Shown here: piece after piece, positions 4,632-23,129 of the stretch | How the letters are laid out: each line of letters begins with the position of its first letter | Position numbering within the stretch: the stretch's first letter is position 1 | DNA from: Macrostomum hystrix | Lineage: Eukaryota; Animalia; Platyhelminthes | Length of the DNA stretch: 64,000 nt | Direction of reading: 5' to 3' | Assembly: GCA_950097015.1 (NCBI GenBank) | Contig: CATNEN010000008.1 | Coordinates: 1,674,001-1,738,000 of the forward strand | The notes under the pieces: model-generated | Database searches by the model: none | What the model was told of the DNA's origin: nothing | What the model saw: only the letters and a program-made list of their open reading frames with translations | Program-made: the position numbers and the translations under genes

Positions 4632-7112
4632 CCAGAAACATTGAATATCTTGATGGTCTGAAGAGCTGGTGACTTGTTTCTTGTTTCAGAAGATGAGCAA
4701 CAAAAGTTGGCCCATGTTCTTGAGTTTCATGTGCTTGCATTGTTACATTTGGGTGCAGCAAAAAATTGTCAGGGGGGATTTCCCCCCCTTGTTAGTTCTA
4801 CTGTTAATAGAAAAAACACTTACTTATTATTATTTTTATTTATTTATTTATTTTTATTATTCATTTTAATTTTTTAAATGCTTTTTTTACAAGACCTACA
4901 AGCATCATTTAGCTAAATAAAAATTTAATTATGCTAGTAAAAAAACAACAGCTAAAAAGTCTTAAGTTGGGCTCATTAAGAATTAATAGCCTAGCTATAA
5001 AATAACTCTAAAAAATTGACTATGAATTGGAACTTTATAAGTATAGAAAATTGGGTAAATATCACATTTTTTGTAGTAAACTTGATAACATTTGGTAGAG
5101 CAACAAGTTAGGCAAGTGATTTCAAAAGAAAAGTTTTGTATTTGCTTCTAATCAAAAGATGTCACTTTTTTAATCTGAAAAAAAGAAACTTTCTTAGGCC
5201 TATCTCCATAATTTTTTAAAATTAGAAACTTAAAATTAAAACATAGATTCCTATCTTTCTACTCCTAATTGTCCATGATTGATTTACTAGGGGCCAGATA
5301 GGCTAAGGTGTCTATTGAACACTTAGTCTTGAGGAGGCCATTCTGATGACCAATCCTATACTTTTATTTCTATTTAAGTTAGCCCTAACCTAACACTAAC
5401 ATTAAGTGCCATCTTGAGCCTGTCAAGTCTGGCCTTGCCCTCATTTGACCTTTGCTAGTACACTAAGGGCCTAAAAACAATTGCCACCTGTTTAGAAGTT
5501 GAGTAGTTGAAGCTGCCATTCGTTTTAATATAAATTGCAAAGACCTGGACAGGGGAACATTTATTATCAGGGACATAGGATGTCTGGGTGTTGGGGACCA
5601 GCCTTCCCAGTGTTCTTTAAAATTTTAAGTCAACAACAAACAACAATCACAACAAGGCAAAAAGTAGGCCTACAAATGGCATACAGCCAGGGCCTTGTTA
5701 AAATAATACTGCAGCACATAGTTGCCACCTTCATGACTAGGCCCTATTTATGTTTTATCATTTGTAGTATAAAATGCTGCTACATTATTTACATACATTT
5801 CCTTCAATAAAAATAAAAAAATTAGATTTTTTTAAAGTATACATGGATAAAAAAGTATACATGGACATTAGAAAATAACTTATTAGTAAAGTACAATAGA
5901 CAATCACATAAATGAAAATGTTATGTTCATTTTTAGCTTGTACAATTAAGTATGATATTATGATAAAAAAACAGAATAATCGACTATCTTATGAACACCA
6001 CGTTGTGTACTAAAAAATTGGTGACCCAAAATTGCCATATTGGTGCTTTTATCCACCAATTCGTTTTGTTGACTGACGGATTAATCTGGAAAGATCCACA
6101 ATTGAACCTTGAAGAACATAGAATTTTGCCCCTGAAAATCTAAATATTAACCTCTTTGTAACTTTTCGGCAACAAGTATTAAGAGCAATTGCTATTACTT
6201 TCAGATTTTATGCTGTCTTTTGTTGTAATGAAAACGACCGCACGATAAGTCTGTAGTACGTAAATTTGAAATCAACTTTTCATTATACCCATTTTAAAAA
6301 GAAAGTGAAGCCAGGCGGACCACTAAATATTGTTTCTTGTTTTAGTGCTGTTAATAGTGAGTAATTAGTAGCCCAGGACCAAACATTGCTTAGTATATAT
6401 TTTTTCCTTCCTCTTCCTCTGGACACAATCCAGAAAATGTTCACTTGACTACACTGCTGTTGTACTAATATCATATATATAATTGTCATATATTTGTCGT
6501 TTTTCAAGTTGCGTAATTGATCCTCTGTCACTTTTGTGCAATATATTTTGGGGAAGTTAGGCAAATAATCAAAGCAATCAAAATAATTACGTAGTTTAAA
6601 ATATGTGATAGTCCGGATAACAAAATCTTCATTTTTAAGGCTGTATATTATGGACATTTCCGTATCAGTAGGAATATAAGTAAATATCTATATTACTATG
6701 TTAATTTAAATAATGAAAAATTTTATAATTTGCATAATTACAGGACATATATCTATGCTGATTAATAAATCATTGCATGTCGCATGTGAATTTATTGGTT
6801 AAGGATCAAAATACGAGTATGTAATTTTGCTAGAAAAAAGGTATAATTAAAGTCACAGTTAGACAATAAAATTGTTGCTACAATCAAACCAAAAACTCAT
6901 GATTATGTAATAAGCTTGATTCTGTGTAAAAGTCATTATTAAGAGTATCGAAGAGTAACAAAAATGTGAGTAAGTACTGGTAAGTCAATAAAGCTAACAA
7001 TAAAAAGTATCACTAGCATCTTCAGGTTGAAGACTAAGACTCGCAATGCTGCGAGTATTAACTTGAACCGAGTGCAATATAATTTCAGTTTAAAATAAGT
7101 GAAAATAGTAAT

Positions 7113-18415: not shown

Positions 18416-18672
18416 ATGAAGATGTGATCTTCATTGAGATGAGAGAGCAAAGTACTCGTATTTTGCCCAAAGTTTCTTGCCTGAAAAGTTTAAATAAGCC
18501 ATTAACAGCACAGCTAATGACTCATAAATTGAAAGTAGATTGAGGGAAAATGCAAACTATAAGAATCCACATGCTGTTGGTTGATGCTTAACGGTAAATT
18601 TCGACAACTGCATACCCACAGTCTGGGTATGCAGTATGCTGCTGCTGTTGTTGTTGTTGTTGTTGCCGGCGC

Positions 18673-19100
18673 TCACGCCGAGGGGGGCGGGCTGAGACCC
18701 GTCCTCCTCGCCAGCGTGACCACGGCTGCTGGACTGGTAGCGAGGACTTCAAGCTGGGGCACTGGCGTCCCAAACACTGCCGTCCTGACGGCGTACAGTG
18801 CCGGGCATTCCGCCAGCCAGTGCTCCACGGTTTCGGGCGCCTCTCCGCAGCGCTGGCAGGTGGGGTCCGCTGCTGGGTTAACCACCTGGCTGTAGGCGCG
18901 GAGGGCGCTGCAGTGGCCCGCTCTGAGGCGGGCGAGGAGGACGGCGTCCCGGCGGCAGCTGATCTCACGGCGGTCGCGTTCCTTCGAGTGACCGGCATAT
19001 GCGAGCGCCGTGCGGGCGTGCTGTCGCGGGGGGTCCACGATGGAGCGGCTGATGAGTGCTCTGGCGCAGGCAAAGGTCGCCGGCAGCGGCGCGGGACCTG
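18673..19100 (-). pseudogene. C-terminal part of the Ingi ORF with CCHC zinc knuckle
   Basis: LARLRAGHC...CQRCGEAPETVEHWLAEC, followed by the (CAA)n tail. Confidence 0.88.
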
Positions 19101-19111
19101 GCCTTCCCCGT

Positions 19112-19442
19112 CACGTAGCTGACGTCCGCCCGGCACCAGACACGCAACCGCAGCCTCCTGGGGTGGAGCGAGCTGTCGAGCGGGATGCCGAACCACGACG
19201 GTCTAATAGGGTGAAGTCGGCGCCGGTCCGTTACGAACCTTGATCTCTTGTGATCCGGAGATCAGGGGGTGATGTGTTGTACTTTCATTATTTAGAAACT
19301 AGTATTTGACCGTTGCAGCTAAATATCCCATAGACAATTCGTTCTACCTGTTTGTTTGCGAGGACCGCGTTAAGAGTGTTTGCGGCTCTAGCTTTCGTGC
19401 TAACCCCGGGCTTTGCTATCTACACAAATACATTAGACCACA
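19112..19442 (+). mobile_element. 3' remnant of a Ty3/Gypsy element (integrase tail, PPT, 170-bp LTR) inside the Ingi
   Basis: PRRSNRVKSAPVRYEP* is a typical integrase tail. It is followed by the purine tract AGGGGGTGA and an LTR TGTG...CACA at 19273-19442. Confidence 0.75.
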
Positions 19443-19444
19443 AG

Positions 19445-22400
19445 CTATCGCGACTGCAGGGTGGTGGGCCCGCGGCGCTCGTTTAGCAGCCTGCAGAGAG
19501 GCAGTACGCTCGGGTTCAGGCTGTCCAGGGCGGTCAAGAGGGCCCGGCTGTCGGTGGCGATGGTGACCTGCCCCTCCGGGCCGTGGTCAGCCAGCCAGCG
19601 CAGGGCGCAAGACATGGCCTGCAGCTCCTCCTGGAAAGAAGAGGTCAGCTCGTGGCCTCGACCGCTCGCCTGGAACTGGGCCACCGGGAGCTCCGGGTCG
19701 CCGGTCGTAACGGCGAAGGCATGAGCGCCGTTCCTGGTGCCCTCGGCTGCTGAGCCGTCGGTATAAATGGTGACAATGCCCTGGTGACTGCGGATGGCTT
19801 CAACTGCGGCGCGGCGGAGGGCCGGCTGGCTTTCTTCCTTGGTGAGGCCGCCAGGCAGGTCGCAGCAGACCCGCCAGCCCGCCCGGCTGAGTTCCCAGGG
19901 CGGCAGGTCGGTGCGGGTGAAAGGAGCACGGGAGGCCAGGGCGGGTGGGAGCGACGCCGCCAGCAGATTGGCGGCGCGGCGCCAGCTGGAGCGCACGAGG
20001 CGATGTGGTGTCACTCCTGAGGCGGCGAGGCGGGCCGGGTGCGAGTCGGGTAGGCGGAGGGCGCGCTCCAGGCTGGTGGTGCGGTAGGTCGGGAGGCCCG
20101 CTTCCGCGTGGAGGGCCTCGAGCGGGGAGGACCTCAGCTGGCCGGTGACAATGCGCAGGGCCGAGTTCTGCGCGCGCTCCAGGCGGTCGAAAACGGTGTC
20201 CGAGAGCCAGGGCTGCCAAGCGGGGGCGGCGAAATTGAGCACGCTCTGCTGCATCGCGAGGTAGCAGCGGCGGAGCGACTCCTTGCACCAGCCCCAGTCT
20301 CTGGCGGCCAGGCACATCAGCATGCGGTTGCGGGCTGCAACGCGGCGGGTGACCTCTGTCACATGCTTGGAGAAAGACAGGACGCGGTCCAGGAAGACGC
20401 CCAGGAAGCGCGGGGTGGCGTTGAAAGGCAGCTGGCGATTGTCGATGGAAACGGCGGGTTGCCATTCGGCCTCCTGGGTAGCGGTGGAGAAAAAGGCCAC
20501 CTCGCTCTTCTCCACGTTCAGGAGCATCTTTCGTGAGCTGCTCCAGGCGGCAACGGCAGTCACGGCGACTTGCAGTTGCTGAGCCGCTGTCGATTTGTCG
20601 TGGTGCTGGGCCAGGAGAGCGACGTCGTCGGCGTACATGGAGTTGGAGACGCCACGCGGGATGACTTCGACTACCTCATTGATGTACAGCAGGAAGAGGA
20701 GCGGGGCCAGGACAGAGCCTTGAGGCAGGCCCTGCCTCAGCCGAAAGCTGCGACTCTGGCTGCCGAGGATGTCGACACGGGCTTGTCTGTTCAGCAGGAA
20801 GCCGCCCGTCCAGCGCAGGAAGTGGCCGGGGATCCCTTTGTGATGCATGGAGAGCAGCAGCCGCTCGCGCCACACCCGGTCGTAGGCTCGCGAGTAGTCC
20901 AGCAGGGCCATGACCGCCCGCAAGGCCGGGCGGGCCTGGAAGCCGTCGCTGATCAGCTGCGTCACCCGGAGGACTAGGTCCTCACACGAGTGCAGCTGGC
21001 GGAACCCGGCCTGAGTGGGAGAGAGCCAGCCGCGCGTCTCGGCCAGGTGGTACAGCCTGGCGTGGACCATTCTCTCCAGGAGCTTGCCCACGCAGGAGGT
21101 GAGGCTGATCGGCCTGAAGGACGAGATGGCGCTCGCGGGCTTCCCGGATTTCAGGAGCGGGATGATGGTGGCGGTGCGCCAGCACTGCGGCGTCTGGCCT
21201 AGCCTGAAGGACAGGTTAAAAATATTCAGCAGGGCCGAGAGGGCCCTGGGCCCCAGGGGGGGAGCAGATTTGCCGACAAATTGTTGGGCAGCAGCGATGA
21301 TGGTGTCTTTGAGCTGGACTGCCTGGGTCTTGAGGCTGGCCGTCGGGTCGATGGCGGGCAGTGTTTCCTCTACAGCGGCCGAAAAGGCGCCCCAGTCGAC
21401 ACCGATGCGGCGCCAGCGGGGCCGGCCGTCTCTCCGGCGGATGGTGTCGACGCGGGAGGCCACCGTGATGAAGATCGGCAGGTGGTCGGAGCCGAGGTCC
21501 TCCCCAGTAGACCAGGAGCATCTGTCGGACCAGGTCTGGTGGACGAGCGAGACGTCTGGGGTGCTGCTCCCGCCTGTGCCGCGGTTGACGCGGGTGGCGG
21601 AGCCGTCGTTCAGCAGGCTCACCGGGTTCGAGGTGACCCAGTCCTCGAGGAGCTCGCCCTGTTGGTCAGGGGGCTGCTCGGAGTCCCACAGTGGAGAGTG
21701 CGCGTTGAGGTCACCGCAGAGGACGGTGTCGGTGAGGTCAGGAAGCCAAGCCCAGTCGGCAGGGACGGGCCCGTCTCTTGAGGGCGGACAGTAGACGTTG
21801 TGGATGGTGATCCACCGTTTGGCGCTAAGGCGGACGCGGATGGCCAGGGCTTCGGCAGGGGCCGGAGCAGTTGGTGCCGCGGTCCTCGTGAAGATGACGG
21901 ACTCATGGACCAGAAAAAGCAGGCCGCCTCCGGGGCGGCCGTCTGCGCGGTCTTGCCGGATCGCCGAGAAACCCCTGATGGAGGGCGTGGCGTGGGGCGA
22001 GCGCAGTTTGGTCTCCTGGATGGCTACGATGTCGACGTCAGCGCCATAAAGGCAGTGCTCGAGCTCTGCGACTTTGGGGGACAGGCCGTCCGCATTCCAC
22101 TGGAGGATGCGGAGCTTGTCACGGCTGGTCCCTGGGTGGGGCTCGTGCTTGTCAGCGGCAGGTGGGCTCGCCCGGGGAGGGGGCCGAGAGGAGCGCTGAC
22201 TGCAGTCGCTGCAGTTCCAGCCGGCCCGCCGGGTGGCAGACGCAGCGGCGCCCCGGGAGAGGCCGGAGCAGGCTTGGTGGAAGAGCGACGAGCAGGAGGA
22301 GCAGGTGAGCGGCGTGATGGTGCGCGCAAAACACTTAGCACAGCCTTGGCAGGATCTCGGTATCGTCCCCACCGGTCTCGGGGGCGGGGGGGCGAGAAGG

Positions 22401-22987
22401 CGGCGGCCGGCGATGGAGGGCGCTTGGCGAGGCGGCTGGTGAACCGGGCACAGCCAGCTTGGGGCGCCGCGGTATCTGGAGCGGCCGCTGCAGCTGGTGG
22501 CCGCGTGGCAGGCGGCTGGGCAGCCAGGGGCGCTGCAGAGGGTAGGCTGGGTTCCCTGACGGATGGGGCCCCGGCAGCTCGCACAGTGCCGAGAGACTGA
22601 GGTCGGTAGCGGAGCCGGAGCTTGGCTTGGCCGGGCAGGGCCCGGCGCCCGATTTGCGTTGTGGTTCGGGCAGAACCACGGCAGGGACTGGGCGGCTCTA
22701 GACTGGCCGCTACAGCATTTCTGCCGGTGCGACTTGGCGTCGCAAGGTACGAAGCTGCAGGCGAGCCACGGGCAACCCTGGCGGAAGAGCTTCCCGCAGC
22801 TGGAGCAGCTTGGGCCGGGGTTAGGGTGGATGTCTCCGGCCCGGAGCAGCAGATCTAAAAGGTTGAAGTCCCCGTCACCAGTCCAGCCAGGCCGAAGGCC
22901 TGTGCCGAGGTGTCCGAGGTTGAGCACTTTGGTAGGCCCCAGGGTGTTAGCCTGGGATCCCGGTCGCCGCGAAGAGGCAGTGCTCAT
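19445..22987 (-). CDS. Ingi polyprotein: 2A-like peptide, 3 PHD-like fingers, APE endonuclease, reverse transcriptase, partial RNase H
   Basis: Motifs: GDIHPNPGP; three Cys/His clusters; LQWNADG/QETKL/GDLNAH/SDHLPI; PQGSVLAP/YADDV; YTDGSA/EELQA/TDSRAL. The APE-RT linker is shortened in frame. The ORF stops where WVPGH should follow. Confidence 0.92.
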   Translation of the reverse strand: MSTASSRRPGSQANTLGPTKVLNLGHLGTGLRPGWTGDGDFNLLDLLLRAGDIHPNPGPSCSSCGKLFRQGCPWLACSFVPCDAKSHRQKCCSGQSRAAQSLPWFCPNHNANRAPGPARPSQAPAPLPTSVSRHCASCRGPIRQGTQPTLCSAPGCPAACHAATSCSGRSRYRGAPSWLCPVHQPPRQAPSIAGRRLLAPPPPRPVGTIPRSCQGCAKCFARTITPLTCSSCSSLFHQACSGLSRGAAASATRRAGWNCSDCSQRSSRPPPRASPPAADKHEPHPGTSRDKLRILQWNADGLSPKVAELEHCLYGADVDIVAIQETKLRSPHATPSIRGFSAIRQDRADGRPGGGLLFLVHESVIFTRTAAPTAPAPAEALAIRVRLSAKRWITIHNVYCPPSRDGPVPADWAWLPDLTDTVLCGDLNAHSPLWDSEQPPDQQGELLEDWVTSNPVSLLNDGSATRVNRGTGGSSTPDVSLVHQTWSDRCSWSTGEDLGSDHLPIFITVASRVDTIRRRDGRPRWRRIGVDWGAFSAAVEETLPAIDPTASLKTQAVQLKDTIIAAAQQFVGKSAPPLGPRALSALLNIFNLSFRLGQTPQCWRTATIIPLLKSGKPASAISSFRPISLTSCVGKLLERMVHARLYHLAETRGWLSPTQAGFRQLHSCEDLVLRVTQLISDGFQARPALRAVMALLDYSRAYDRVWRERLLLSMHHKGIPGHFLRWTGGFLLNRQARVDILGSQSRSFRLRQGLPQGSVLAPLLFLLYINEVVEVIPRGVSNSMYADDVALLAQHHDKSTAAQQLQVAVTAVAAWSSSRKMLLNVEKSEVAFFSTATQEAEWQPAVSIDNRQLPFNATPRFLGVFLDRVLSFSKHVTEVTRRVAARNRMLMCLAARDWGWCKESLRRCYLAMQQSVLNFAAPAWQPWLSDTVFDRLERAQNSALRIVTGQLRSSPLEALHAEAGLPTYRTTSLERALRLPDSHPARLAASGVTPHRLVRSSWRRAANLLAASLPPALASRAPFTRTDLPPWELSRAGWRVCCDLPGGLTKEESQPALRRAAVEAIRSHQGIVTIYTDGSAAEGTRNGAHAFAVTTGDPELPVAQFQASGRGHELTSSFQEELQAMSCALRWLADHGPEGQVTIATDSRALLTALDSLNPSVLPLCRLLNERRGPTTLQSR

Positions 22988-22995
22988 TGACCGGG
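22921..22995 (-). ncRNA. candidate HDV-like self-cleaving ribozyme at the Ingi 5' end
   Basis: P1 CCCGGUC/GACCGGG, P2 UGAGCAC/GUGCUCA, P3 GCC/GGC with L3 UCUUCGC, P4 CCCAGG/CCUGGG. The fold is 75 nt and starts exactly at the TSD boundary. Confidence 0.78.
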
Positions 22996-23129
22996 GCTGC
23001 TGCTGTTGCTACTGCTGCTTTTATGGCGGCGGCTGCTGTTTTCACAGCGGGCGCCGCTGCGGCTGCGGCTGCGGCTTCTCTTCTTGCAGTCTCGGGCAAC
23101 ATGCCTGAGACCGCAACATCGATGGCATA
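22984..23129 (-). CDS. CCHC zinc-knuckle + RS-repeat exon (SRSF7/9G8- or GRP2-like architecture), truncated by the Ingi insertion
   Basis: Acceptor tttttatttgcAG. Reads CHRCCGLRHVARDC (C-x2-C-x4-H-x4-C) then KKRSRSRSRS...SSSSNSSS. The current stop codon lies inside the LINE. Confidence 0.72.

Follow-up and report, generated by a model that had tools for sequence, protein, structure and literature searches.

An HDV-like ribozyme fold, probably self-cleaving, at the 5′ end of a LINE inserted into a CAG repeat of Macrostomum hystrix

The LINE and its insertion site

The window analysed here, a 64-kb stretch of the genome of the flatworm Macrostomum hystrix, carries on its minus strand a LINE which is framed by CAG-type repeats. 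We refer to this element as family A. The following features could be assigned.

18648..22995 (-): complete copy of the LINE; its 3′ end is a (CAA)6 tail (18665-18648)
18647-18639 (-): (CAG)3, located 3′ of the (CAA)6 tail
19445..22987 (-): ORF of 1180 aa with endonuclease, reverse transcriptase and partial RNase H
22811..22870 (-): stretch coding for a 2A-like peptide (aa 40-59) which ends in DIHPNPGP (codons 52-59), assigned by sequence reading
22996..23019 (-): upstream CAG-type repeat (the target), adjoining the first helix of the fold, P1

Family A has two copies in the 220-Mb genome (42 contigs), the one in the window and one termed L003, which reside on different chromosomes. They are about 99% identical, and in the ribozyme region they are identical from the same base onward. 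The L003 copy is also preceded by a CAG repeat, and its (CAA)n tail is followed by CAG repeats at the 3′ end. The window copy differs from L003 by a 520-nt deletion, a 21-nt deletion and the replacement of 19455-19102, while L003 carries a 1-nt frameshift, and thus both copies are defective.

Among named protein relatives, one from M. lignano ranks best (50% identity). The architecture of the family group comprises a 2A peptide, PHD-like fingers, endonuclease, reverse transcriptase (RT), RNase H and a C-terminal knuckle. When the element was termed "Ingi" in an earlier sequence-only reading of the window, this is, judged from the domains encoded, to be taken as a description of an Ingi-like architecture and not as a clade placement.

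Within the 2A-like stretch, residues G51, D52, N56, P57, G58 and P59 are invariant in alignment A1. Family A deviates from the 2A consensus D-[V/I]-E-x-N-P-G-P, as its sequence DIHPNPGP (window 22811-22834, minus strand) has a His at the position of the canonical Glu. Substitutions of this Glu were inactive in published assays (PMC3708506), and by analogy the family A 2A peptide may, with His replacing Glu, be weak or dead.

The window copy lies in sense orientation in an exon-like stretch (22984-23124, minus strand) that codes for a CX2CX4HX4C knuckle followed by an Arg/Ser-rich tail. This stretch reads the repeat as Ser codons, and its frame stops at a TGA which overlaps the ATG of the element. 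A Pfam search with the Gly-rich upstream ORFs found nothing.

A nested double pseudoknot in the first 75 nt

The first 75 nt of the LINE RNA can be arranged into a nested double pseudoknot in which every helix is perfect. Upon sequence reading, the HDV-like strand order P1-P2-P3-L3-P3′-P1′-P4-P2′ is complete on the minus strand (window 22995-22921). RNA positions are numbered such that position p corresponds to window position 22996-p on the minus strand, and RNA position 1 is window position 22995. The elements of the fold, all on the minus strand, are listed in 5′ to 3′ order up to J4/2 and the second strand of P2.

between 22996 and 22995 (-): predicted cleavage site, at the 5′ edge of P1
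22989..22995 (-): P1 5′ strand CCCGGUC (RNA 1-7), forming 7 Watson-Crick pairs with 22959-22965
22986..22988 (-): J1/2, AAU, overlapped by the ORF start codon
22979..22985 (-): P2 5′ strand GAGCACU (RNA 11-17), pairing with 22922-22928
22966..22978 (-): P3, GCC (18-20)/GGC (28-30), with loop L3 UCUUCGC, matching the Rfam HDV consensus
22958..22965 (-): P1 3′ strand GACCGGG (RNA 31-37) and A38, which may pair with U23 of L3 as the only pair of P1.1
22937..22957 (-): P4 hairpin with 7 bp, one of them U-G, and a loop of 7 nt (RNA 39-45 pairs with 53-59)
22929..22936 (-): J4/2, CCUACCAA (RNA 60-67), with candidate catalytic cytidine C64 at 22932, then C-A-A
22922..22928 (-): P2 3′ strand AGUGCUC (RNA 68-74), partner of GAGCACU

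Such a fold in 22921-22995 had been proposed in the sequence-only reading, and its coordinates proved to be exact. When the helices were read again, P1 and P2 with 7 bp each, P3 with its loop and the P4 hairpin were all recovered, P2 being possibly extended to 8 bp by an optional U10-A75 pair (with the A at 22921). Its position at the very start of the element is supported by the genomic boundary: in both family A copies, the CAG repeat is directly followed by the 5′ strand of P1.

P3 consists of three GC-rich pairs. Alignment of the segment to the Rfam HDV consensus shows that L3 opens with a 5′ U and has a C-G near its 3′ end. P1.1 comprises at most one pair, the U23-A38 pair already considered possible in the earlier reading, and A38-U39 is invariant in the alignment of family sequences. 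Provided that U39-G59 and U17-A68 pair, J4/2 has 8 nt. It ends in CCAA directly 5′ of the P2 3′ strand, so that the C-N-A-A context equals that of the HDV consensus CuAA, and C64-C65-A66-A67 is invariant in all six aligned sequences. The ATG that opens the 1180-aa ORF does lie inside the fold, as had been noticed before; it occupies RNA positions 9-11 (window 22987-22985) and overlaps J1/2 and P2.

Both nested halves of the pseudoknot are stable (-25.6 kcal/mol for P1+P3+P4 and -24.2 kcal/mol for P2+P3+P4). As these values come close to the nested minimum free energy of -28.5 kcal/mol, the knotted fold is energetically plausible. The nested-fold z-score of the 75-mer is only -1.67.

Database models and pattern searches

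Two Rfam HDV models (RF00094, RF02682) match the region, and both matches begin at the first bases of the element. The HDV-F-prausnitzii model aligns to 22938-22995 (minus strand) with 23.4 bits and an E-value of 0.063, against a gathering threshold of 44, and the HDV_ribozyme model to 22920-22994 (minus strand) with 18.5 bits, against a gathering threshold of 50. Both scores are well below gathering.

Our own strict descriptor, which replaced an earlier loose version with 1092 matches, gave 3 matches in the 64-kb window, compared to a mean of 0.8 in 20 shuffles. As about one match per window is expected by chance, a descriptor match alone is not rare, and the evidence derives its strength from the location at base 1 and from the related elements described below. 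The other two matches, at about 2714 (plus strand) and about 39025 (minus strand), were taken to be chance matches; the latter is antisense to an ORF and is devoid of a proper P4.

Exact-pattern scans for the catalytic block were also performed outside of this genome. In viral contigs there were ten matches, all of them in unrelated coding DNA and attributed to chance, and a protein-based scan of the viral contigs found no relative. The single match in a metagenome scan is located inside a bacterial membrane-protein gene and is a chance match, too.

Sister families conserve the core and show matched changes

A protein search of the genome uncovered two sister families with 44-45% identity to family A. 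Family B consists of L007, L010 and L037, and family C of L009 and the decayed L011. Members of both families are integrated in CAG repeats, have a (CAA)n 3′ end and code for a 2A motif (DVEVNPGP in family B, DLELNPGP in family C). An intact member of family C encodes 1548 residues and has the PHD-like fingers between 2A and endonuclease.

We built a covariance model from the window sequence alone, with P2, P3 and P4 entered as nested pairs. It matches exactly ten sites in the 220-Mb genome, and all of these are 5′ ends of the A/B/C LINE group, with scores of 46 bits for family B and 39 bits for family C. In the model-based alignment, 95% of the cells pair, compared to 25-45% when partners are slid. 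Nine pairs (4 in P2, 5 in P4) change on both sides among the families, a number reached by none of 500 shuffles. The third pair of P1, which is C-G in family A, is flipped to G-C in families B and C. P3 and L3 do not vary among the families and are thus uninformative on covariation. Since the alignment was fitted to the model, and since its basis is three lineages plus degenerate copies, we consider the covariation to be support rather than proof. It had been proposed to look for covariation across copies; the family A copies are identical and contribute nothing, and the matched changes come from the sister families.

Sequence conservation is concentrated in the core. A block of 22 nt (P3-L3-P3′-P1′-J1/4) is identical between families at 20-22 of its 22 positions, whereas the rest of the leader up to NPGP is only 53-64% identical. 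In families A and C the ribozyme region is inside the ORF. In family B, however, the ORF starts only downstream of the core, its start codon being part of the P2 3′ strand, and therefore coding cannot explain core conservation in this family. Ahead of the C-N-A-A motif, the relatives have 0-4 extra bases, with four in family A. J4/2 is longer than canonical, as stated in the sequence-only reading, but in view of the relatives there is no need to regard it as a special structural variant.

These data bear on the possibility that the fold is fortuitous, with a GC-rich coding leader that happens to fit a loose descriptor and with conservation which stems from the encoded peptide. The frequency of descriptor matches in shuffled windows, the sub-threshold Rfam scores and the location inside the ORF in families A and C would be compatible with this. 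It is nevertheless very hard to reconcile with a position starting at base 1, with the same architecture and matched double changes in the sister families, and with a core that is more conserved than the surrounding coding sequence and, in family B, is located upstream of the start codon. We consider a chance fold to be extremely improbable.

P1 is probably split in families B and C

In families B and C, the 3′ strand of P1 reads GACCCGG. Its complement is split into CCG, which represents the first bases of the element, and GGUC, which directly precedes J1/2. The base 5′ of CCG is C, G or A depending on the copy, which indicates that CCG is the true terminus. The two parts are separated by an insert of 40 nt in family B and 46 nt in family C, which folds as two abutting hairpins without an unpaired base (L007 1286-1332; L009 1265-1317). 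The inserts have energies of -33.2 kcal/mol (z-score -4.45) in family B and -22.1 kcal/mol (z-score -3.5) in family C. With two abutting hairpins inside P1, this helix would form a perfect four-way junction in families B and C.

A contiguous, bulged P1, which is the choice of Rfam's model for families B and C, was also considered, and we rate it below the split P1. With such a P1, cleavage would take place 40 nt into the element, and a very stable hairpin would have to open at its base. In addition, its best ungapped 7-mer pairs at only 5 of 7 positions.

More distant LINEs with HDV-like folds

Three more distant LINE families that carry a 2A peptide also start with HDV-like folds, as detected by the descriptor. 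One of these, family E, is from the same genome (L016 and L020 on the minus strand, L026 on the plus strand, at oriented positions of about 1455-1530). It has a 68-nt HDV-like fold with G-U as first pair, and its 2A (LLSGDVEPNPGP) follows about 190 nt later. Its three copies have unrelated flanks, and the point of divergence is exactly the first P1 base.

The other two, L057 (87-170) and L058 (3452-3535), are eukaryotic LINEs with an HDV-like fold and a 2A that are found on contigs filed under bacterial bins, and they likely represent host contamination of symbiont bins. The fold is preceded by a GAT repeat in L058 and by a longer satellite in L057. An Rfam search of the stray eukaryotic contigs returned nothing at E-values up to 1, and this includes L057 and L058, whose folds are evident at the descriptor level. 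The folds of family E, L057 and L058 have in common with that in the window the L3 pattern U...CG and either C-A-A-A-U or C-C-A-A before P2′.

Insertion into CAG repeats and an open Gln frame

All seven full-length 5′ junctions from families A, B and C abut CAG-type repeats, and each of the 3′ ends examined (5 of 5) is a (CAA)5-9 tail followed by (CAG)n. On the basis of the flanking repeats, CAG junctions were assigned in the window (22996-23019 and 18639-18665), in L003 (860-1000 and 5596-5640) and in L073, L074 and L075 (near 4880-4970). Thus, the same repeat occurs on both sides of independent insertions, as is the case for microsatellite-specific LINEs, and from these flanks families A, B and C appear to be CAG-repeat-specific. 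In a review of LINE microsatellite targets, only ACAY, AC, TC, TTC and TAA are given and CAG is absent (PMC3812793).

In families A, B and C alike, no stop codon interrupts the Gln (CAG) frame that leads from the upstream repeat through the ribozyme and into the ORF and its 2A. The open frame covers 22811-23019 (minus strand) in the window, 1260-1560 in L007, 1240-1560 in L009 and 2-4897 in L075. In the latter case, a flanking zinc-knuckle/polyQ ORF continues into the LINE as one uninterrupted frame. Insertions of family C (L009 1090-1265) and family B (L010 1130-1230), which are independent, are both located just downstream of similar CX2CX4HX4C knuckles that are followed by polyQ. Judging from these two cases, a frequent target of insertion may be a repeated gag-like gene that contains a CAG tract.

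One may speculate that families A, B and C are an undescribed CAG-specific LINE lineage with a 5′ module that exploits transcribed, and even coding, CAG tracts. The ribozyme would free the RNA, and in transcripts that escape cleavage the Gln frame would enter the ORF, where 2A could release the enzyme from the host-encoded part. We put this forward as a tentative idea that is rather unlikely to hold in full. Should the split-P1 version be active, it would represent a novel topology of the HDV fold, for which family A would provide a natural uninterrupted control.

Proposed role of the fold

We are fairly confident, on sequence evidence, that the region 22995-22921 (minus strand) represents a genuine self-cleaving HDV-like ribozyme, and that it very probably trims the transcript of the element to its exact first base. 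This reading is supported by the fold itself, by the sub-threshold Rfam matches that start at base 1, by conservation and matched changes in the sister families, and by the unrelated flanks of related families, whose divergence sets in at P1.

In the proposed course of events, the element integrates into CAG repeats, which would often be situated in transcribed DNA, and it would be transcribed within a longer host transcript, probably from a host promoter. The double pseudoknot would then fold, and C64 (22932), together with L3, would catalyse scission 5′ of C1, between 22996 and 22995. The released RNA would start at base 1 of the element with a 5′-OH. The folded ribozyme would remain on this RNA, the AUG within it would serve as translation start, and about 50 codons further on the 2A-like peptide would separate a leader peptide from the enzyme. 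What the analysis shows directly is the fold, its base-1 position, the conserved catalytic block and the matched changes; cleavage, co-transcription and any role in translation are inferred. The base before the cut is a C, which is unable to pair with A38, and P1 is thus not extended at the expense of P1.1. Such an extension is the inhibitory case described for L1Tc (PMC3185411).

The fold might also be real and conserved without being catalytic. It could be a structured 5′ leader that allows a cap-independent translation start, protects the 5′ end or binds a protein of the element, or it could act at the DNA level as an internal promoter like Pr77. The start codon within the fold and the weak P1.1 fit with this, and support of translation initiation has been reported for HDV-like folds at the 5′ ends of LINEs, with Pr77 being both promoter and ribozyme (PMC6765202, PMC3185411, PMC4748587). 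However, the invariant parts are those which the chemistry needs (C-N-A-A in J4/2, U...CG in L3, and P3), and in each family the element opens with P1, as is predicted by cleavage. Such other roles are compatible with cleavage. We consider a purely non-catalytic leader improbable.

With P1.1 reduced to one pair and J4/2 lengthened by four bases, the fold might also have been disabled and would then be the inactive relic of a once-working ribozyme in decaying copies. The disabling ORF lesions in both family A copies, the low copy number of two and the His that replaces the key Glu of 2A point in this direction. In contrast, every helix is perfect, L1TcRz works with a single-pair P1.1 (PMC3185411), and the two copies must be recent as they are about 99% identical. 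We thus regard this explanation as unlikely, too, and favour an active ribozyme.

Comparison with known systems

HDV-like ribozymes at the 5′ ends of LINEs are established for R2, L1Tc/ingi, RTE, baggins and other metazoan elements (PMC3774820, PMC3185411, PMC4035085, PMC6765202). The kind of ribozyme is thus already known, from insects, trypanosomes and other animals, and family A is a further example at a LINE 5′ end.

By analogy, L1TcRz is the nearest analogue, being of similar size, with a P1 that starts with C, a single-pair P1.1 and a 2A downstream. Pr77 of L1Tc/ingi from trypanosomatids is, like the family A fold, contained in the first nucleotides (about 77) of a single-ORF LINE with endonuclease, RT and RNase H. 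The P1 5′ strand starts with C in both (primer CCCTGGC..., PMC4748587; L1Tco 5′ end, PMC4035085 supplement), the P1.1 of L1TcRz is a single pair as is the candidate P1.1 of family A (PMC3185411), and the 2A is located in the N-terminal part of the ORF (PMC3708506). For the L1Tco 5′ end (PMC4035085 supplement), size and helix order match those of family A, a likeness which is at the level of description. At positions +25 to +28, Pr77 has CGTG, family A has CGCG and the cores of families B and C have CGUG, so that C-G at +25/+26 is common to all. Family A differs from L1Tc/ingi by its animal host, by its CAG-repeat target and by a P3/L3 that is closer to HDV itself (GCC/GGC).

With the genomic HDV ribozyme (RF00094), family A shares the nested double pseudoknot, P3 GCC/GGC and the C-N-A-A cytidine before the P2 3′ strand, and a single substitution plus a single deletion separate the two L3 loops. 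At the cleavage site, family A has the pair C1-G37 and HDV a G-U wobble, and P1.1 is at most one U-A pair as opposed to two G-C pairs. Furthermore, P4 of family A is short, and four extra bases are located between P4 and the cytidine.

R2 ribozymes act at or near the 5′ junction, where they process a site-specific LINE out of the transcript which it shares with the host (PMC3774820), and this is the role proposed for family A. R2 differs by having a restriction-like endonuclease and 28S rDNA as target. Large J1/2 loops are common among its ribozymes, and there are species in which 28S sequence provides P1. The ribozymes of RTE, baggins and other metazoan LINEs and SINEs have the same role, as they process the 5′ ends of elements which lack a promoter and are transcribed from those of the host or of neighbours (PMC6765202). 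RTE and baggins elements belong to different LINE clades, and neither a 2A nor a microsatellite target is described for them in the literature cited here. 2A peptides have been described in animal Ingi-like, CR1, L2 and Rex1 elements, in a study that does not mention ribozymes (PMC3708506).

The split-P1 ribozymes of families B and C have the catalytic block, the CAG target, the (CAA)n tail and the 2A leader in common with family A, but P1 of the latter is uninterrupted. Family A and families B/C thus form a matched pair that bears on the tolerance of a four-way junction in P1. The CAG target of the group is one that the list of LINE microsatellite targets lacks (PMC3812793). Ribozyme and 2A are combined in trypanosome L1Tc/ingi, and the animal LINEs with this architecture have the same arrangement, which suggests that these two devices travel together.
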